Notes under the pieces: generated by a model
Seen by the model: the letters and a program-made list of their open reading frames with translations, nothing else
Database searches by the model: none
What the model was told of the DNA's origin: nothing
IMG/VR virus record: IMGVR_UViG_3300033984_000473
Location: 124,001-188,000 of that record
Length of the DNA stretch: 64,000 bases
Strand: one strand, 5' to 3'
Position numbers and translations under genes: made by a program
In this document: piece after piece, positions 5,027-63,288 of the stretch
Position numbering within the stretch: position 1 is the first letter of the stretch
Layout: each line of letters begins with the position of its first letter

Positions 5027-5803
5027 TTATCCCCAACCTTTTTTTACTAATCTTTCAGAAGCTTCAATTACAGCTTCCTCATACCATTTATCATAAGAAG
5101 ATAAGATATATTTTGTGTGAAAATCACTTTCACCAGCAAAATTAGAAAGCATTTTTGTTTGACTCAAAGGCCCATGACCAATCCATGTTACAACCCAATT
5201 CTTGCTACCTAGTGTGACAATAAGTTGTGAGAAGAAATCGTTTAATTTATCACCAATTACAGTATTTGAATACCATTCATTCAACCAATTGGTTGCAAAT
5301 TTTTGTTGGTAATCGGTTTCGTAATCAATCCTTGATTGTAATGACTCAATCAAGGATTTACTACTATCGCCTTCTTTGTATAAACTAATCAATTCATTCA
5401 AGGTTGGTATAATGTATTTTTCTTTATAGAAATCATTAAAGAAGTTGGTTATAAATTCTTCATGGTACAATTGTTTTCTGGCACTGGTAAAATGATTAAG
5501 AGTTTCATTTAACATAATCATACTTCCATCAGAACCAGACGCTTTTTCCAAATAATCTGTAAGAACGTGTGTTAAGATTCTTTTCTTAGCGTTAAACCAA
5601 CGTTGGAAGTATTCGATTGAATTAACAGTTCCATCAATATCTGGACTCACAAACTCACCAAATATTTTTCTGTATACCAATACAAAATCTCTTGGACTTA
5701 TCTCTTTATAGCTATCTACTTCTGTAATAACAAAACTACTCTTTGAAGTTTTCACAGTATAGTTTTTTTCTAAAAACTCGGTAATTAATTTTTCATCTGT
5801 CAT
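5027..5803 (-). CDS. hypothetical protein
   Basis: 258-aa ORF; N-terminus EKLIxxFLxKNY shared with 9288..9767. Confidence 0.7.
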   Translation of the reverse strand: MTDEKLITEFLEKNYTVKTSKSSFVITEVDSYKEISPRDFVLVYRKIFGEFVSPDIDGTVNSIEYFQRWFNAKKRILTHVLTDYLEKASGSDGSMIMLNETLNHFTSARKQLYHEEFITNFFNDFYKEKYIIPTLNELISLYKEGDSSKSLIESLQSRIDYETDYQQKFATNWLNEWYSNTVIGDKLNDFFSQLIVTLGSKNWVVTWIGHGPLSQTKMLSNFAGESDFHTKYILSSYDKWYEEAVIEASERLVKKGWG

Positions 5804-5851: not shown

Positions 5852-7771
5852 TTATAGATTGATTAATGATAAATTAATGTTCTTTTTCTCAATATCTACA
5901 CTAGATACAACCACATGAACCATATCACCAAGTCTTAATTTAGAACCAGTATTGTATCCTTTTACACAGTAATTAGCCATGTCAGCCGAATAAACATCAC
6001 CACCAATATCAGACAATTTGATAAGTCCTTCACACTTGTTTTCCAGGATTTCAACAAACACACCATACTCAGTAACCGAACTAATGATACCTTCAAACAC
6101 TTTACCAATGTTATCACTCATGTAAATACATTGCATGTACTTGATTGAATCTCTTTCAGCTTTTTGTGCTTTCTTTTCTCTCTCAGATAAGTGAAGACAT
6201 CTAGTTTCAAGCTTCTCTAACTTAGGCATAGTTGTTTTGTTCTCATCCAAATACAAACCTAACAACCTATGAACGATTACATCTGGGTAACGTCTGATTG
6301 GACTTGTAAAGTGTGAGTAGTCTTTAAACCCAAGACCATAGTGACCAATGTTTTTGGTTGTATAGTTTGCTTTCTGCATAGTTCTAACTACCAGATTATC
6401 AATCATATCCGACTCAGCAGTACCTCTTGAATCAACTAGCAACTGGTTAAGTGTTTTTGTTGTTTCTTCTGGGCTAGTTGTTCTAATCTCATAACCGAAT
6501 TGTTTAATGAACTCTTTAAGACTATCTAACTTAGTTTCGTTAGGTTTGTCGTGAGCTCTGTTAACATTTGGCAGTGCTCTTTTGTTAATGTATTGAGCAA
6601 CGTGTCTGTTAGCCAATAACATATATTCCTCGATAAGCTTGTTAGCATCTTTGGCAACCTTGAAGATGATACCTGTTGGTTTGTTGTTCTCGTCTAACTT
6701 GAACTTAACTTCTTGTTTATCAAAAGATATAGAACCCTTAGACAAACGAACCTTACGCATTTTTTGTGCTACTCTATTCAAATGTAAAACAGCGTACTCC
6801 AATTTACTAACTACTTTATCAGTACCACCTTTTGTTTCAATTATTGTTTGAGCTTCTTCATAAGTAAGTCTACAATCAGAGTTGATTACAGTTCTACCAA
6901 ACCATTCTTCTAACACATGTCCATTATGGTCCATTTTAAAGACAGCTGAGAAGCAAAGCTTATCTTCGTTAGGTCTTAACGAACATAGTCCGTTAGATAA
7001 GTTCTCTGGAAGCATAGGGACACATCTATCTACTAGGTAGACACTTGTTCCTCTAGCATACGCTTCTTTGTCTAATTCGGTATCTGGTCGTAAGTAATGT
7101 GATACATCGGCAATGTGAACACCCAAAAACAATTCACCGTTTACCCATTCAACACTCAAAGCATCATCAAAATCTTTTGCATCAGCTGGGTCGATGGTAA
7201 ATGTAAGTACATCACGCATATCTCTACGCTTATCAATTTCAGCTTGTGTAATCTCCGTTGATATTGCTCTGGCTTCTGCCAACACATCTTCTTCAAAGTC
7301 GTATGGTAAACCATATTCTTCAAGGATGCTATGGATTTCAGTTTCATGTTCACCAGAATTACCTAGAATTCTAATTACTTCACCATTAGGGTTCTTTGCG
7401 TTGTCTTTCCATTCAGTTAACTTAACAATAACCTTTTGACCTTCAGTCGCATTCATTGTTTTATTTAAAGGAACAAAGAAATCAATTGGAAGCTTGCTGC
7501 TATCTGGTACAAAGAAAGCAAACTTTTCACTCAATTGGAGTACACCAACGAATTCGGTTCTGAATCTCTCTACGATTTCAACAACTTCACCTTCTAAAGC
7601 TCTACCATTTCCAGTAATAACTTTTATTTTTACAGTATCTAAGTGTAACGCTTTGTTGGTGTTACTTTTGCTTAGATAAATGTCTTTTGGTAAATCTTGA
7701 CTTACCAAGTAAGCGGAGCCGCTAGCATTCATGCTAACTTTTCCTTCTAATATATCATCTATTTTAATCAT
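5852..7771 (-). CDS. rnr: ribonuclease R (RNB family)
   Basis: CSD domains, TIDPADAKDFDDALS catalytic motif, HFTSPIRRYPD, C-terminal S1. Confidence 0.95.
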   Translation of the reverse strand: MIKIDDILEGKVSMNASGSAYLVSQDLPKDIYLSKSNTNKALHLDTVKIKVITGNGRALEGEVVEIVERFRTEFVGVLQLSEKFAFFVPDSSKLPIDFFVPLNKTMNATEGQKVIVKLTEWKDNAKNPNGEVIRILGNSGEHETEIHSILEEYGLPYDFEEDVLAEARAISTEITQAEIDKRRDMRDVLTFTIDPADAKDFDDALSVEWVNGELFLGVHIADVSHYLRPDTELDKEAYARGTSVYLVDRCVPMLPENLSNGLCSLRPNEDKLCFSAVFKMDHNGHVLEEWFGRTVINSDCRLTYEEAQTIIETKGGTDKVVSKLEYAVLHLNRVAQKMRKVRLSKGSISFDKQEVKFKLDENNKPTGIIFKVAKDANKLIEEYMLLANRHVAQYINKRALPNVNRAHDKPNETKLDSLKEFIKQFGYEIRTTSPEETTKTLNQLLVDSRGTAESDMIDNLVVRTMQKANYTTKNIGHYGLGFKDYSHFTSPIRRYPDVIVHRLLGLYLDENKTTMPKLEKLETRCLHLSEREKKAQKAERDSIKYMQCIYMSDNIGKVFEGIISSVTEYGVFVEILENKCEGLIKLSDIGGDVYSADMANYCVKGYNTGSKLRLGDMVHVVVSSVDIEKKNINLSLINL

Positions 7772-7778
7772 TCAATTT

Positions 7779-8294
7779 TTAGTATTTTATGAACTGTTCA
7801 ATCAGTTCATTATATTTTTTTTCATCATTTTGTATCTTACCATAATACAACTTTGTCATCGGTTCGTATTCTTTTTGTTTCACTTTCAGATTTAATTGTT
7901 GTGTTTGCCACCATGGATAAATATCTCGATTAAAGTGATAAAACATCATACACGCATATCTATCTGCAATTATTTCTTCCTCGAAAATGTGTTCAGTAAA
8001 CTCTGTAAAGTCTTCAAAAGACAATTTTCGTAATATCTCACTTCTACCAAACTTAGTAATCCTTTTAAAATGAGCAACTTCGTGAACTATTATAAAGAAA
8101 ACCAGCTTATCACTATATTTGTCAATCAATTCAATATTCAAATATATACAATCCAGAGTGGCAATACCCAAAGGACCATTTAAACATCTGTCTTTAAAAG
8201 TTATACCACTATTTTCAATAAAGGTTACTAAATCGTTAAAATTTAATTTCCCATGCCTTGCTTTCAACGCTGTTATTATTGTTTCATCTATCAT
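7779..8294 (-). CDS. HExxH metallopeptidase-like protein
   Basis: HEVAH plus downstream EIIAD. Confidence 0.6.
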   Translation of the reverse strand: MIDETIITALKARHGKLNFNDLVTFIENSGITFKDRCLNGPLGIATLDCIYLNIELIDKYSDKLVFFIIVHEVAHFKRITKFGRSEILRKLSFEDFTEFTEHIFEEEIIADRYACMMFYHFNRDIYPWWQTQQLNLKVKQKEYEPMTKLYYGKIQNDEKKYNELIEQFIKY

Positions 8295-8329
8295 ACACAA
8301 AGATACTACAATTATTTGTTTATTGCAAT

Positions 8330-8354
8330 AAAAAAACCCACTAAATTTAGCGGG
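8330..8354 (-). terminator. intrinsic terminator
   Basis: CCCGCTAA-AT-TTAGTGGG hairpin followed by T-run on minus strand. Confidence 0.6.
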
Positions 8355-8362
8355 CCTCTATC

Positions 8363-8878
8363 TTAATGCCTATCAGCTGGCACTACATTTATCTTGAAAG
8401 TTTTAATTCTTCCGCTTGAAATTAGCTTATCACCAAATGCTTTGAATATTGGAATATGTTCCAATCTATCATCCCATAGTTCAATCTCAGTAACCTGTGG
8501 GTACTTATGTAGTAAAGATTCAATTGTTTTCATCTTAGCCACTTCTGTTGCACCACCTCTGTTGAAATGGTATTCATCAAACTCTAGGTTTTTGCTATCT
8601 AAGATTTCTTTAACTAGGTCAGTAAGTAGAACCATACGACCAGTAAGCATAACCATAACAGTTGATTGGTCTTGTTTTTCTACATTGTAAGCATCAATGA
8701 CCATTGGTACACTTGGCATGTCAAATATTTTCATATCTAAGCTTAGTGGTCTACCCCACCATCCTGGAAAAGGCCAATCTCTACCTGTCTGTTCTTTGTA
8801 ATGTTTCTTACCAAATTCTGGTAATGGTGTATCAACCAGTGTTCCGTCAAAATCGAATATCGATAATTTTGTTTTCAT
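8363..8878 (-). CDS. HAD phosphatase, Swiss-Army-Knife RNA-repair-like
   Basis: FDFDGTL, WW, LTGR, WDDR motifs. Confidence 0.8.
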   Translation of the reverse strand: MKTKLSIFDFDGTLVDTPLPEFGKKHYKEQTGRDWPFPGWWGRPLSLDMKIFDMPSVPMVIDAYNVEKQDQSTVMVMLTGRMVLLTDLVKEILDSKNLEFDEYHFNRGGATEVAKMKTIESLLHKYPQVTEIELWDDRLEHIPIFKAFGDKLISSGRIKTFKINVVPADRH

Positions 8879-8883
8879 AGTTT

Positions 8884-9264
8884 TTAATTTATGACCAACA
8901 ATCCGATTGTGATTACTATAAAAATCATTCCTAGTATGAATGACCCTTTATTTATTTTCACATAATCCTGTTGGTCTGTGGTTCCATTGGCCAATAGTGA
9001 CCCGTGTATTCTTTTTGTTGCTGAACCAATCAGTACTGCTGTTATCGGTCCATGTGCGTTAATAGTTTGTTTTAAAGCACCGTTTATTCTTTTCGTTTCA
9101 TATATCTTTTCCTTTCTCAATTTCTCGATTGAATCCAAGTTATTTTTCTCATAGTCATCTACTAACGTAAGAATGGTTTCTAGATTTGGTTTGGTTTTAT
9201 CTAATTCAATTTGAATCTTGCTACCTAATTTTCCTCGTCTAGTTTTTAATATGTTAAATTTCAT
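8884..9264 (-). CDS. hypothetical protein with C-terminal TM helix
   Basis: ORF; hydrophobic C-terminus. Confidence 0.7.
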   Translation of the reverse strand: MKFNILKTRRGKLGSKIQIELDKTKPNLETILTLVDDYEKNNLDSIEKLRKEKIYETKRINGALKQTINAHGPITAVLIGSATKRIHGSLLANGTTDQQDYVKINKGSFILGMIFIVITIGLLVIN

Positions 9265-9287
9265 TTTTCATTTCGTTTACAAAGGTA

Positions 9288-9767
9288 TTAATTATTTTTG
9301 AATAATCCTAATATTCTATAATAAATATTCTCTATAACTTCAATAATTTTATTTTTTATCTTTTCATACATAGTTTCTTGTTTGTATTGAAAATCCATAT
9401 AAAACAATTGACCAACTGGTGCTGACATAGGCTGAACTGGTACCAAATCCATGGCTATGGTTTGTGCGAACACTCTTCGAACCATTGGAAACGCTACGTT
9501 TTCAAATAAATTTTCAAGGGTTTGCCAGAAGAATTCTAAATCAATATCTGGTTTTATTTTGGTAGACCAAAGATGTATATAAAGCTTAGCTTCTTCTTCT
9601 TCAATGTTAAATACAGTGATTAACTCATTGGTTAGCTTGGTGCCGCAATGTGGTGTTTTAAATTTCCTATCATCGGAAAATGAGTATATTCCATCGTTAC
9701 CAACTTCGCTAGTATCAACGTAATAATTTTTTGACAAATAATCGTATATGAGTTTTTCCATATACAA
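9288..9767 (-). CDS. hypothetical protein carrying a T4 gp23-like major-capsid (Gol-region) segment
   Basis: AFPMVRRVFAQTIAMDLVPVQPMSAPVGQLFYMDF resembles the conserved gp23 VRR..D...VQPM..P.G motif. Confidence 0.7.
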   Translation of the reverse strand: MYMEKLIYDYLSKNYYVDTSEVGNDGIYSFSDDRKFKTPHCGTKLTNELITVFNIEEEEAKLYIHLWSTKIKPDIDLEFFWQTLENLFENVAFPMVRRVFAQTIAMDLVPVQPMSAPVGQLFYMDFQYKQETMYEKIKNKIIEVIENIYYRILGLFKNN

Positions 9768-9797
9768 TTATAGTCATAATAAAAATAAGTGTCAAGG

Positions 9798-10292
9798 TTA
9801 TTTAACAACTTTCGGCTTGATTACCGCAAACATTTTTTTACCTTCTAACTTAGGCATAGCTTCTGCTGACCCAAATTCTTCAACAGCAACAATCATTTTA
9901 AGTATTTGTTGTTGACCAATATCAATATGTTGCATTTGACGACCTCTAAACTGAAGGCTAATCTTAACCCTGTGACCTTTTTTAAGGAACTCAACCATGT
10001 GTTTGATTCGGTATTCCAAATCATTATCGGTTGTGTTTGGTCCAAGCTTGATTTCTTTTACATCTAATCCTTTGTTCTTAGGCTTTTTGCTTAATTCGTA
10101 TATGAACTTTTCATAGTTCATTATCTTACAAATTACTGGAACTGTCTTATCGTTGATAAGAACCAAATCCATGTTTCTAGACTCAGCGATTTGTAAGGCT
10201 GCTGATAACGCCATAACACCACCTTCTTCAGCGACACGCACTTCTTTTGCGATGATTTCTGAATTAAGCTTATGCTGTTTCTTTTTGTTCAT
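9798..10292 (-). CDS. infC: translation initiation factor IF-3
   Basis: N..I.A.EVR, DLV, PVICKIMNYEK, KEIKLGP, G.RVKISLQFRGRQ, PKLEGK. Confidence 0.93.
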   Translation of the reverse strand: MNKKKQHKLNSEIIAKEVRVAEEGGVMALSAALQIAESRNMDLVLINDKTVPVICKIMNYEKFIYELSKKPKNKGLDVKEIKLGPNTTDNDLEYRIKHMVEFLKKGHRVKISLQFRGRQMQHIDIGQQQILKMIVAVEEFGSAEAMPKLEGKKMFAVIKPKVVK

Positions 10293-10821
10293 TTACTATT
10301 TTTTTAATCAATTCTAATTCTAATTGTTTTATGAAATTTTCATCGGTAATTCTACTTAAGTTGTTTGACCAACCTATTTTATGTTTAAGGTTTTCATTAT
10401 AGGTAACTGGTTGAAACCATACAACATGCTTGCCTTGAAATTCGCCTGGGTTATCTCGTTCTGATTCATTTGGATTGTATAATTTGTATTTATAATATCT
10501 TATAGAATCTAACATTACATGGTCAAGTGCATCAATGATATAGATGGGCCCTACTGAAACATCAACATAAGCATATCTAGCCATCAAAAAAGATTGTGTA
10601 CCATCCAGACTTAAACTTAACTTACCATTAAACACATTCTCAATGCTATAAAAAACTACATCGATTTCAGAATCTGGGTTATTGGCTTTGATTTTTCTTA
10701 CATGAGTTTCAATATTAGTATCCAAGTCAGCAAAGTTTTTAAGACCTCTTGAATTAACGTACTTAAGTTCATCATTTTGAAAAAAAATTGGAAACGTACT
10801 ATTGTGAATCTTTGTTAACAT
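10270..10821 (-). CDS. hypothetical protein
   Basis: ORF overlapping neighbours. Confidence 0.7.
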   Translation of the reverse strand: MLTKIHNSTFPIFFQNDELKYVNSRGLKNFADLDTNIETHVRKIKANNPDSEIDVVFYSIENVFNGKLSLSLDGTQSFLMARYAYVDVSVGPIYIIDALDHVMLDSIRYYKYKLYNPNESERDNPGEFQGKHVVWFQPVTYNENLKHKIGWSNNLSRITDENFIKQLELELIKKIVNEQKETA

Positions 10822-11282
10822 AAATCTTCTAAGATAAATTGAATCAATTCTTCTATAGATTCAACCATTGGTATGTCATATGTATTACAAACAATATCAA
10901 CATTACCTTTTCGCCAGAAACCTTCTGGACACATAACAACTAACTTACCACTTTTTGAATGCAATCCTAATTCCAATAAAGAAATTGGTGACATAGTGTT
11001 AGGGTCAAATACCATGACGATGATGTCGGCACGTTCCATAGAATCTAATTCCCATTCTACTTGTGTTCTAAACTGCTCATCGTTAATGTTTTGTATCAAT
11101 GATGAATCCCAATCATCTCTACGAGGATTTAAGAATAAGATTGGTTTATCGGCCAATGCTTCGATAAGTGTTTTTTGCCAATTTATGGCTTTACCCATTT
11201 CAATTGAACCACCTAAGAAGACTTTTAAATCGTGGGTTAGGGGTATTGAGTTAGGTGCTTGTATTTCTATTGCTTTTCCCAT
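10815..11282 (-). CDS. nucleoside 2-deoxyribosyltransferase-like protein
   Basis: VFLGGSI, NPRR, QVEWE, SPISLLELG. Confidence 0.85.
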   Translation of the reverse strand: MGKAIEIQAPNSIPLTHDLKVFLGGSIEMGKAINWQKTLIEALADKPILFLNPRRDDWDSSLIQNINDEQFRTQVEWELDSMERADIIVMVFDPNTMSPISLLELGLHSKSGKLVVMCPEGFWRKGNVDIVCNTYDIPMVESIEELIQFILEDLC

Positions 11283-12019: not shown

Positions 12020-13276
12020 TTATCCACCACTTACTTCATCATTAATATCATCCCATGGAAATGGTTCTGATTCCATTACACTCCCTACTGATATTGGTCT
12101 TGAAACTGATTTTTCTTTCGTTTCAAAGATATTTTCACTACCATCTTCATCATCTTCATCAACAGCTTTCATGATGTTTTTAGCAAACTTAGAAATGCTT
12201 TTGCTAGGTTTATCAATCATTGAACTACCGTACCCATCATAAGCGTATGAATAGTTAACAACATCAGCATCAGAAACCTTTAAGATAATTGGTTTATCGA
12301 AACCTAATTTCTTACCCTTCTCACCATCAAATGGTGAAACTTCAACTGTAGTCCAGTCGATTACTCTAGTAATCATACCAATTGATTGACCATCAATTTC
12401 AAATCTATAGTTCACATTGTTATCACCATAGGTTGGTCTAGGATAAACCTTAACGCTGTTAGCCAATTGAGCCATTGTTCCATCTTCTTCTTTGATAGAA
12501 ATATTGTACGACCCTTTCAATTTTTTAACATTGAAAATGCTTTCAAATGCTGATGGTCCTTCTTCGTGGATGTTTACTTCATTGATAACTGCTTTCACAA
12601 TATCAACAGTAATTGTTTCCAAGTTAGAGATGAATTGAACGCATTCTTGTTTGAATTGTTTGTGCACCAATACATCGTCAACGATTTCCTCAACAATTTC
12701 TGGTTTAAGGTCTTCAAATTTCTTAAGATAACGAATTCTTCCAGGTCTTTGGATAAGATTTCTATCAACATACAACTCATTTGTAGTTAATAAAAATACT
12801 CGTCTGTGGTCTGAATTCATCGCACCATCCATGATTGTTAGCATTGACGCTGACTCACCGAATACCTTCTCATACTCATCAATAAATATCGTAATATTTT
12901 GAGAAATACCATTTAAAAACACATGAATTCCCTTGATTGCGACATCCACTAGGATAATTGGTTGGTTTAATCTACTGGCGATAATTTTCGAACTAACAGT
13001 TTTACCAGTTCCTTTCAACCCATTCAATAGAATACCTAAGTTTCCATTGGTTGTGGCGTTGTAAGTTTTTACAACTCTGTTAACCAATTCAGTTTCTAAA
13101 CCATAAATCTTATAGTCAAAAACAAACCCATCACTACTCTTTGTTAAGAAGAAACGACCATACTCATCTATACCTACGTTATAGATTGCATTCTCTAAAT
13201 TGTCAAACTCCCTAGATGGATATGCTGGGTATAATCTGTTGCTATCCTCATTCCACACTTTTTTCACTTCTGCCAT
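12020..13276 (-). CDS. AAA+ ATPase
   Basis: GLKGTGKT, IFIDEYEK, LTTN, RPGRIRY. Confidence 0.88.
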   Translation of the reverse strand: MAEVKKVWNEDSNRLYPAYPSREFDNLENAIYNVGIDEYGRFFLTKSSDGFVFDYKIYGLETELVNRVVKTYNATTNGNLGILLNGLKGTGKTVSSKIIASRLNQPIILVDVAIKGIHVFLNGISQNITIFIDEYEKVFGESASMLTIMDGAMNSDHRRVFLLTTNELYVDRNLIQRPGRIRYLKKFEDLKPEIVEEIVDDVLVHKQFKQECVQFISNLETITVDIVKAVINEVNIHEEGPSAFESIFNVKKLKGSYNISIKEEDGTMAQLANSVKVYPRPTYGDNNVNYRFEIDGQSIGMITRVIDWTTVEVSPFDGEKGKKLGFDKPIILKVSDADVVNYSYAYDGYGSSMIDKPSKSISKFAKNIMKAVDEDDEDGSENIFETKEKSVSRPISVGSVMESEPFPWDDINDEVSGG

Positions 13277-59299: not shown

Positions 59300-59524
59300 C
59301 TATTCAGAAGATATCATTTGTTTAGCTTTCCCTTCATATAAGTCAGCAAGGTTTATTTTTCCTTCAGTGTTGGTCAATCCTTCCAAAAGACCACTAGCTT
59401 CCCATTTTTCAATGATTTTAGCTTTTTGATATTCACCAACACATCTATGATGCATAAACTTTCTATCATGAATAGCCGCAACTCCTTGGCTATGTTCTCC
59501 GCAATGTGCACATGTAAATGTCAT
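59300..59524 (-). CDS. small Zn-ribbon protein fused to a major-capsid N-terminus-like segment
   Basis: CAHC...HHRC then IIEKWEASGLLEGL...NLADLYEGKAKQMI. Confidence 0.6.
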   Translation of the reverse strand: MTFTCAHCGEHSQGVAAIHDRKFMHHRCVGEYQKAKIIEKWEASGLLEGLTNTEGKINLADLYEGKAKQMISSE

Positions 59525-61155: not shown

Positions 61156-61485
61156 ATGATTGGATATGTTTACCTTTTATTACAAATTGATACCGATGGC
61201 CACGAGAGCCACAAGATTGGTATTACCAAAAATGACCCACAACTTAGGGTTAAGCAGCTGCAAACGGGTAACCCAAACAAAATAAGTCTTTTAAGAAAGT
61301 ATCAATCCAAGAACTACTTGAAGGTGGAACGTTGGTTACACCGTAAACACTCTGGCTCCAAAACTGAAGCCAAGAATGAATGGCGTGTGCTTGCCGATGA
61401 ATTCGTTTTCTCATTCATAAGCGATTGCCAAGAAGCTGATGAAACTATCAATTTCCTATTGGAAAATAACTCGCTGTACGATTAA
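61156..61485 (+). CDS. T5orf172/MUG113 GIY-YIG-like protein
   Basis: GYVYLL, KIGIT, R.KQLQTGNP, E..LH, NEW. Confidence 0.85.
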   Translation: MIGYVYLLLQIDTDGHESHKIGITKNDPQLRVKQLQTGNPNKISLLRKYQSKNYLKVERWLHRKHSGSKTEAKNEWRVLADEFVFSFISDCQEADETINFLLENNSLYD

Positions 61486-61993: not shown

Positions 61994-63205
61994 TTAAATG
62001 TTAGTTGCCGAGATTGGCAAGTTATAGAAATCTCTTCTTATTGTTACTAAAAGTGCATCTACTAATCCTGGGTTTACCTTGTTTGGTAAATCAGATTTAT
62101 CAAATACCTCGTCCATATTTGCTATGGCTTCATCGGCCATGACAATCAACCCATCTAAATCAACTTCACCACGTCTAATCTTAAGAAGTTCTTCAGCATC
62201 TGGTCGTCTAACGATGATACCTTTACCTTCTCCGATTTCTGTAGCCATATTGATAAGTCGCATACAATGCATCATGTTCTTACCATCAATCTTTTGACCA
62301 TGACCTTGAACTTCAACGTATCTGGTTACATTTCTTTTATCTAACCATTCTTGGTATTCTTTAAAGTCTTTACAGTGCTCTGAATAACCATCTTTGTTAT
62401 AAACGATTGTACTGATTGTTTTTTCACCTTTAGGAATACTAGAAAGACGTAGTTGATTTGAGATACCATAGTTAATGACCCCATCTTCATCTTCATGACC
62501 AGTGTTTACAAGTCCTTTATATCCAAGACCCATTGGCTTACCAGCATCTTTTAGAACAGCCTTTCTTTGGTTGCGTTCTACTTCTGAAAATTTATCAGAG
62601 TGACACATTTCACCAACACTGTCATAAAATAAAGCATACGTATCCCTAGCGTTAGGTATGTTTACAGCACCTATGAATTTTTCATCGTACTTCCCAGAGT
62701 TCCATATTTTCCATGGAATTGATTTCTCACCTTCAAGTACATAACAGAAATCCAATAGGTCTTTACGAACTACTTTGTCCTGTTCCCAGTTTTGTTTCTT
62801 GTTAAGTCCTTTGGCTTTTTTGATTTGCTGTCTAGCGTAACCACCGAAAGAATCTTTACACGCTTTGGTGATGAAATCTTCCTTGTGAGCAATGATAATG
62901 TCAAACAAAGGGTTCTTTGTGACGATACAATCTTCTGGACTGTTAAGGAGCTCAAGAACAGTTGGGTTGTTTGTACTCATAAGTTCTAAGAACCTTTTAA
63001 GTTCCCAACCCGTCCAATCTTTATTGATATTCAACTGTTCAACATATCCAGTACCCAAGATATTATCAATAGGCAAGATGTAAACGAATTTTTTATCCAC
63101 ATCAGACGTTGGTGTCTGCGTACCATAGGCTTGACTACCAATAATGCATTCAAAAAGAATCAATCCATTCTCTTTAAGGTAATCGTATGTAATTTTCTGT
63201 GTCAT
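61994..63205 (-). CDS. nucleotidyltransferase (YcgL/DNA pol beta-like family)
   Basis: GSQAYGT.TP.SDVD, NP..LE.L, K.MMH..RL. Confidence 0.85.
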   Translation of the reverse strand: MTQKITYDYLKENGLILFECIIGSQAYGTQTPTSDVDKKFVYILPIDNILGTGYVEQLNINKDWTGWELKRFLELMSTNNPTVLELLNSPEDCIVTKNPLFDIIIAHKEDFITKACKDSFGGYARQQIKKAKGLNKKQNWEQDKVVRKDLLDFCYVLEGEKSIPWKIWNSGKYDEKFIGAVNIPNARDTYALFYDSVGEMCHSDKFSEVERNQRKAVLKDAGKPMGLGYKGLVNTGHEDEDGVINYGISNQLRLSSIPKGEKTISTIVYNKDGYSEHCKDFKEYQEWLDKRNVTRYVEVQGHGQKIDGKNMMHCMRLINMATEIGEGKGIIVRRPDAEELLKIRRGEVDLDGLIVMADEAIANMDEVFDKSDLPNKVNPGLVDALLVTIRRDFYNLPISATNI

Positions 63206-63288
63206 ATTCTTAATTTTTAACAAAGGTATGTATAATTTATTAAACTACCAAACATTTTTACATTTTAATTCCAGTAAGATAGATAAAT

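Follow-up and report, generated by a model that had tools for sequence, protein, structure and literature searches.

A small jumbo-phage protein bearing a Gol-like piece of the major capsid protein on an unrelated carrier domain, a putative molecular mimic

The major capsid proteins (MCPs) of the Gp23 family (PF07068), about 450–620 aa in length, adopt a complete HK97-type fold with a spine helix, a P-domain and an A-domain, and are encoded in the head module beside the scaffold and the prohead protease. In phage T4, residues 94–122 of gp23 form the Gol region, the trigger of the Lit abortive-infection protease, in which the Gol peptide binds domains II–III of EF-Tu and makes EF-Tu a substrate of Lit; binding of the T4 MCP to EF-Tu is reported (cited in 10.64898/2026.01.04.697583). 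This stretch lies next to the maturation cleavage site and faces the scaffolding core, with which the homologous region (gp23 66–105) makes contact and to which the head-length mutations A94V and G97S map (PMC9546572). Three further kinds of protein are relevant for comparison, namely the microProteins of plants and animals, which are small proteins derived from, and interfering with, larger proteins (PMC7534434), the phage anti-defence mimics and decoys, for example DNA-mimic proteins and sponge proteins, and the T4 internal proteins, which are variable, encoded outside the head cluster and targeted into heads by a short signal (PMC9958956). The T4 signal is a roughly 10-aa N-terminal sequence cleaved at LxE.

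The locus described here lies in a window of 64,000 nucleotides, corresponding to bases 124001–188000 of the 232,931-bp uncultured virus record IMGVR_UViG_3300033984_000473, which has 33% G+C and a CheckV completeness of 64%, and the DNA runs that hold it are lake and freshwater metagenomes. An initial annotation made from the sequence alone had pointed to a Gol-like major-capsid segment at 9384..9497, embedded in a small non-capsid protein next to IF3, and this observation is confirmed. ORF 9288..9761(−), here called p159, encodes 157 aa (stop codon included in the interval) from a probable ATG start at 9761, although an open reading frame listing extends it to a TTG at 9767. The interval 9384..9497 covers aa 89–126 of this ORF, and the peptide VAFPMVRRVFAQTIAMDLVPVQPMSAPVG is encoded at 9411..9497 on the minus strand.

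The capsid-like segment as a whole spans aa 86–133 (9363..9506, minus strand), and its match to capsid proteins is far beyond chance. It matches Pfam Gp23 with an E value of 4.2e-12 and 46.6 bits against a cut-off of 24.4, although only over profile positions 4–53 of 376, or about 13% of the profile, and it matches PHROG 138, the major head protein, with an E value of 1.4e-10. A phmmer search against solved structures aligns residues 91–129 with T4 gp23 residues 96–134 (MGMVRRAIPNLIAFDICGVQPMNSPTGQVFALRAVYGKD) at an E value of 0.012, with 17 of 39 residues identical, including the D-x-x-x-V-Q-P-M-x-x-P-x-G-Q core, so that the T4 sequence given in the initial annotation was correct. The phage's own MCP is a 613-aa ORF at genome 25080..26921, next to a scaffold-like acidic protein and a prohead protease, and blastp shows 56% identity between p159 residues 88–123 and MCP residues 70–105 (E 3e-10). 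In contrast to the MCP family, nothing in p159 matches beyond the N-arm segment, with no spine helix, A-domain or P-domain sheet, and the gene, at 133 kb of the genome between IF3 and a membrane-anchored ORF, is far from the true MCP, scaffold and protease at 25–29 kb. The protein is not the capsid gene, as the initial annotation had stated, and it cannot form a capsid shell.

The AlphaFold2 model of p159, built on 34 homologues, predicts three parts. The N-domain (aa 1–82, 9516..9761, minus strand) is confidently folded over residues 1–80, with pLDDT 85–96 and the order helix–strand–strand–helix–helix; the capsid-like segment, residues 84–126, has a pLDDT below 50 and is thus predicted to be disordered in isolation; and a C-terminal amphipathic helix (aa 131–155, 9297..9371, minus strand) is predicted with a pLDDT of about 79. 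Fold searches in the PDB, BFVD, a wide VIA-align search and the ESM Atlas returned no significant match for the model. The best VIA-align Z, 4.8, was to winged-helix domains, below the stated noise level of 7–8 for that method, while Foldseek found nothing at an E value of 0.001 or better, and no inhibitor-like or enzyme fold was recognisable in the N-domain.

A protein search returned 34 homologues of 117–227 aa reaching down to 39% identity, of which 33 share the N-domain and one weak hit (P0034) lacks it; 24 of the 34 carry a precomputed Gp23 hit. In 12 related freshwater jumbo-phage contigs the gene order is kept as IF3, p159, a tail-anchored 126-aa ORF, HAD, a 173-aa ORF, RNase R and p258. 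In the window, the phage-encoded IF3 (Pfam IF3_N and IF3_C) lies immediately upstream at 9798..10292(−), and the 126-aa ORF at 8884..9264(−), which has a C-terminal hydrophobic anchor and no family match, always follows p159 in the 12 relatives. A conserved block of translation, RNA and nucleotide genes lies at 5852..11282(−), comprising an RNB-domain (RNase R/II-type) nuclease, an RNA-repair-type HAD (HAD_SAK_1), IF3 and a nucleoside 2-deoxyribosyltransferase-like protein, with an AAA ATPase at 12020..13276.

Across the 34 homologues the Gol core is at least as conserved as the N-domain, with a mean column identity of 0.59 against 0.53. The anchor residues P92, T101, D105, L106, V107, V109, P111, P115, L119, Y121, D123 and Y126 are near-invariant, whereas the positions between them vary freely. 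Among the three closest homologues, which are 85–92% identical, the tail changes 2–8 times faster than the N-domain, with dN/dS of 0.37–0.70 in the Gol part against 0.10–0.23 in the N-domain, the latter range omitting one pair (designated G000–P0001) that gave 0.47 on only three changes. Between p159 and its near-identical counterpart at the related locus L049, dS jumps from 0.02 in the N-domain to 0.18 in the Gol part, which points to exchange of the tail by recombination. Since dN/dS stays below 1, positive selection is not shown. Both conditions that the initial annotation had named as refuting, namely the absence of a significant Gp23 profile match and neutral decay of the segment in homologues, were thus examined and did not hold, and the segment is kept by selection.

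The possibility that the p159 segment tracks the resident MCP was rejected, since the MCP motif is identical in three related genomes while the p159 segment differs between them. [quoted passage not shown] The notion that it is clearly closer to a foreign MCP received only weak support, with 68% identity to one metagenomic MCP lineage against 56% to its own MCP and 58% to Flavobacterium phage MCPs.

The N-domain is shared by three further proteins of this genome. One is p258, at 5027..5803(−) of the window, whose relation to the N-terminus of p159 had been proposed in the initial annotation and is borne out by a joint alignment of the three families (p159, p258 and p189) and by hhalign (E 1e-4 over 70 columns); it has a different conserved C-terminal domain with no capsid piece and is conserved downstream of the RNase R gene in relatives. 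Another, p189, is a 187-aa protein outside the window at genome 190125..190694(−) (locus L004:1312-1881; hhalign E 5e-5) with 19 conserved homologues, in which residues 80–127 resemble the MCP spine-helix region 384–431 (46% identity) and residues 143–175 resemble the MCP C-terminal strands 562–594 (42% identity). A provisional reading of the neighbours of p189 as Pth2-like and 2H-phosphoesterase-like was dropped, as a Pfam search found nothing. The fourth paralogue, of 112 aa, follows a phage-encoded sigma-70-family factor (regions 1.2, 2 and 4) and a 98-aa ORF at genome 117772..119271(−) (locus L069). A further small ORF, the 74-aa p74 at 59300..59524(−) of the window, has a Cys/His-rich N-terminus, carries the N-terminal delta-region motif of the MCP (blastp to MCP 28–59, E 0.024, and a motif scan) and ends in ...MISSE; its orthologues in four related records also hit the MCP delta region. 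The four most conserved stretches of the capsid protein are therefore each present in a small accessory protein of this phage. Elsewhere in the genome, the first 72 aa of a 409-aa ORF at window 61994..63223(−) are repeated at 87.5% identity in a 74-aa ORF at genome 189137..189361(−), about 2 kb downstream of the window's end.

A profile of the N-domain found 175 clusters (at 50% identity) among 1.8 billion proteins, with the domain always at residue 1 in proteins of 44–304 aa. Of 150 family representatives, 67 hit Pfam Gp23 and 58 hit the major-head PHROG, and 18 carry the NRNGRVY or GELDHP motif of the prohead protease, in native order where both occur. The protease motifs NRNGRVY, GELDHP and G(V/I)SSR occur in the tails in native order with the spacers shortened, and the tails also contain MCP C-terminal strands and, in some members, the MCP delta motif placed at the very C-terminus, ending in ...LLE close to the putative I/LxE maturation site. 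Consistent with this mosaic, orthologues of p159 at the same locus gain or lose prohead-protease pieces, which replace the C-terminal helix and match the phage's own protease (blastp E 5e-5). No obviously conserved I/LxE was seen at the domain–tail junction in the alignment, although a positional count found one at residue 87 in 8 of 34 members, and enrichment of I/LxE sites in the tails, considered as a sign of pseudo-substrates, was not significant (z 1.5).

Other small ORFs lack the N-domain. Some fuse the pre-spine strand and the spine helix directly to the Gol motif and reach 64% identity to this phage's MCP over 47 aa. One-chain "mini-capsid" ORFs of about 80–217 aa, at the related loci L029:5797-6132, L030:4788-5162, L060 and L062, begin or end with an FKxF(K/R)xxRG-like motif and contain the pre-spine strand, the spine helix and, in three of the four loci (L060 lacks it), the Gol piece; the ESM Atlas holds a 64-member cluster of this type. 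Others, such as the metagenomic proteins P0054, P0057, P0058, P0064 and P0066, string together a portal piece, the MCP delta motif, protease motifs, an amphipathic helix (WYxKIKxFF) and the Gol motif. A complete 335-kb relative has a full MCP plus separate spine-piece and Gol-piece ORFs. Among 50,697 cultured phage records none has the N-domain, and virtually none has a second capsid-piece locus, as the mini-capsid query gave 2,166 places in 2,164 records. Literature searches found no description of such proteins, and p159 belongs to an undescribed class of mini-proteins built from pieces of head-assembly proteins.

The gene appears to be controlled separately from its neighbours. A sigma-70-type promoter at 9762..9795(−) consists of a perfect TTGACA (9795..9790), a 17-nt spacer and TATAAT (9772..9767), followed by TGTAT directly before the ATG, which lies 5 nt away, and predicts a leaderless or near-leaderless mRNA. 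The layout, TTGAC(A/T), a 16–17-nt spacer, TATAAT, TGTAT and ATG, is shared with p189 and kept in 10 orthologues. The same layout, as TTGACT-16/17-TATA(A/T)T-TGTAT, precedes two homing-endonuclease-type ORFs, a T5orf172/MUG113-type ORF at window 61156..61485(+) and an HNH_3 endonuclease ORF at genome 116770..117219(+) (L069:271-720), and the phage sigma factor mentioned above might read the canonical −35/−10 promoters. As a genome-wide class that could have indicated timing, however, this promoter type is not enriched (39 observed, 26.6 expected), and it was not found in front of head genes. A 12–14-bp hairpin at 9732..9776(−) pairs the −10 element and start codon with codons 4–8 (predicted RNA fold −17.6 kcal/mol, z −7.2), and 8 of 10 orthologues fold alike (z −2.6 to −7.2), with arm sequences that differ between orthologues while pairing is kept, as judged by eye rather than by a formal count. 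Transcripts reading through from IF3 would contain the hairpin, which should silence or terminate them, whereas transcripts from the predicted promoter would not, a design that T4 uses for late genes embedded in early transcription units. This is taken as evidence that p159 is expressed separately from IF3, as inferred from sequence alone, and the adjacency, although conserved, is therefore weak evidence for a functional link to translation and probably does not reflect functional coupling. Contigs from RNA libraries of relatives cover the gene, but DNA carry-over cannot be excluded, they gave no transcript starts and they do not prove transcription.

In the model favored here, p159 is a molecular mimic in which a stable 80-aa carrier presents a flexible copy of the capsid N-arm (Gol) segment, which would act by competition, occupying a partner that would otherwise meet the same segment in the real capsid protein. 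Such competitive mimicry of head proteins, whatever the partner, is considered somewhat more likely than not, as it is suggested by a segment that is unstructured in isolation on a confidently predicted fold, by anchor residues that are kept while the rest varies, and by source proteins that are repeatedly reduced to their most conserved motifs. The architecture, the homology, the pattern of conservation, the family-wide mosaic of head-protein pieces and the separate promoter are established by the sequence analysis, whereas it is only inferred that the segment binds anything at all (EF-Tu included), which partner it would bind, and that the outcome would be protection.

More tentatively, the version preferred is that of a late-acting immune decoy, in which the bait would engage host sensors that read short conserved head-protein motifs or prohead-protease activity (Lit-, CapRel- or CBASS-tripwire-like) while the carrier keeps the encounter unproductive, and in which relatives would swap or add other baits, namely protease and other capsid pieces, on the same carrier. 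MCP, portal and prohead protease are documented immune triggers, as Lit and CapRel read short MCP motifs, Avs proteins read MCP and portal (10.64898/2026.01.04.697583), and CBASS CD-NTases are tripwires that are cleaved and activated by the prohead protease (PMC12991175; 10.1101/2023.05.21.541620). This version is ranked first because the tails turn over, recombine and gain or lose protease pieces while the resident MCP stays fixed, because the gene lies outside the head module, and because catalytic-site motifs make sense as things a sensor reads but not as assembly interfaces; the promoter and hairpin, which are predicted to uncouple the gene from its early-type neighbours, and the more consensus-like score of the p159 segment agree with it. 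It should be noted, however, that a bait carrying the true trigger motif could activate a sensor rather than block it, that Avs-type sensors read folded proteins and not linear pieces, that dN/dS stays below 1, that the N-domain has no recognisable inhibitor-like or enzyme fold, and that the same three source proteins are also assembly partners, so that the mosaic fits an assembly role equally well. The only complex prediction, that of p189 with p159 as a possible complementation into a mini P-domain, scored 0.13 against a mark of 0.32 and counts neither for nor against any of these models. The interpretation offered in the initial annotation, a decoy for capsid-sensing defences or an EF-Tu-binding module, is thus partly supported: the decoy remains a reasonable, unproven reading that gains indirect support from the protease and portal pieces, whereas the EF-Tu module is not supported as the general explanation.

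The closest rival, less likely than the decoy, is a self-directed regulator or chaperone of head assembly, comparable to a microProtein, in which the MCP-like segment would cap the N-arm docking site on capsid subunits or compete for the scaffolding core, and relatives with protease pieces would restrain free prohead protease, so that assembly of a very large capsid is timed or premature polymerisation prevented. This is consistent with the contacts and head-length mutations of the homologous T4 region, with anchor residues that are those conserved in MCPs, with the separate small proteins of this genome for the delta motif, the N-arm, and the spine helix plus C-terminal strands, which together cover the MCP's most conserved parts and are fused in one chain in other lineages, and with the finding that all carriers checked are large phages with Gp23-type MCPs. 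It is less easily reconciled with a segment that differs much between relatives whose MCP motif is invariant, with protease pieces that come and go, with a gene outside the head module, and with a promoter type not found in front of head genes. A weapon against co-infecting T4-like phages, in which consensus-like fragments would be dominant-negative poisons of a competitor's head assembly or maturation while the resident's diverged proteins are spared, is the next closest rival but unlikely. The consensus-like score of the p159 segment, the rapid turnover and recombination of the tails and the use of protein fragments as inhibitors in the microProtein concept (PMC7534434) speak for it, but the resident MCP still shares 56% identity and all anchor residues with the segment, so that self-poisoning is not obviously avoided, other family members are not consensus-like, and there is no precedent in phages.

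A packaged internal or minor capsid protein, with the MCP-like piece as a targeting or anchoring element into the prohead and the N-domain as cargo or cement, is rather doubtful. The pieces do come from proteins that co-assemble with the scaffolding core, the T4 internal proteins are likewise small, variable and encoded outside the head cluster (PMC9958956), and hairpin plus internal promoter is also the layout of the T4 late genes soc and e. In p159, however, the N-terminus is a folded 80-aa domain rather than a short signal ending in an I/LxE site, the head-protein likeness is in the tail, and catalytic-site motifs of the protease are odd targeting elements. An EF-Tu-binding module that modulates translation or shields EF-Tu from Lit-type cleavage is improbable; the alignment to the T4 Gol region and the conserved neighbours IF3, an RNase R-type RNB nuclease and an RNA-repair-type HAD would favor it, but it does not explain relatives whose tails are spine-helix, C-terminal, delta or protease pieces, EF-Tu is too abundant to be titrated, and the gene is predicted to be transcriptionally insulated from IF3. 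Least likely of all is a functionless remnant, a capsid-gene fragment captured by a small, mobile, promoter-carrying gene and drifting. The promoter–start layout in front of the homing-endonuclease-type ORFs and the mosaic, recombining tails could be read in this way, but it is disfavored by the reading frame and the 12 near-invariant anchors kept in 34 homologues, by the conservation of the Gol core, by dN/dS below 1 and by the stable synteny of the locus.

Compared with the described systems, p159 differs from the T4 Gol region in that the segment, which in T4 is part of the full capsid protein, is here free-standing on an unrelated carrier in a non-structural locus. Like a microProtein, it is a small protein that keeps one interaction-type segment of a larger protein and lacks the rest, and it belongs to a paralogous set in one genome, but microProteins are known from eukaryotic transcription factors, whereas here the sources are viral head proteins, several of which can be strung on one carrier, and interference is not shown. 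With phage mimics and decoys it shares a small accessory protein with a promoter of its own, a fast-evolving part and a plausible competitive mode of action, although no decoy is known that is built from pieces of the phage's own structural proteins. The most far-reaching reading, possible but held with still less assurance than the simple decoy, is that large T4-like phages carry a modular "poly-decoy" system, in which a conserved carrier domain, or other small modules, bears the most conserved segments of capsid protein, prohead protease and portal, grafted, minimised and shuffled by recombination, so as to blind or jam host sensors that read exactly these proteins, such as the motif readers Lit and CapRel and protease-tripwire CBASS, with p159 as the N-arm/Gol cassette of this phage.

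The finding is more general than the initial annotation had seen, and shows that proteins annotated "Gp23" in metagenomes include many that are not capsid proteins. The family is absent from the cultured phages searched and has so escaped experiment so far, and it offers short natural peptides that presumably bind head-assembly or immune components. Bacterial immunity is now known to read capsid protein, portal and prohead protease, and how phages answer such sensing, other than by point mutation, is an open question, to which a conserved and widespread family that displays exactly the most conserved pieces of these proteins on a carrier would be a new counter-strategy. If the family is instead directed at the phage's own proteins, it would be a new way of controlling the assembly of very large capsids.
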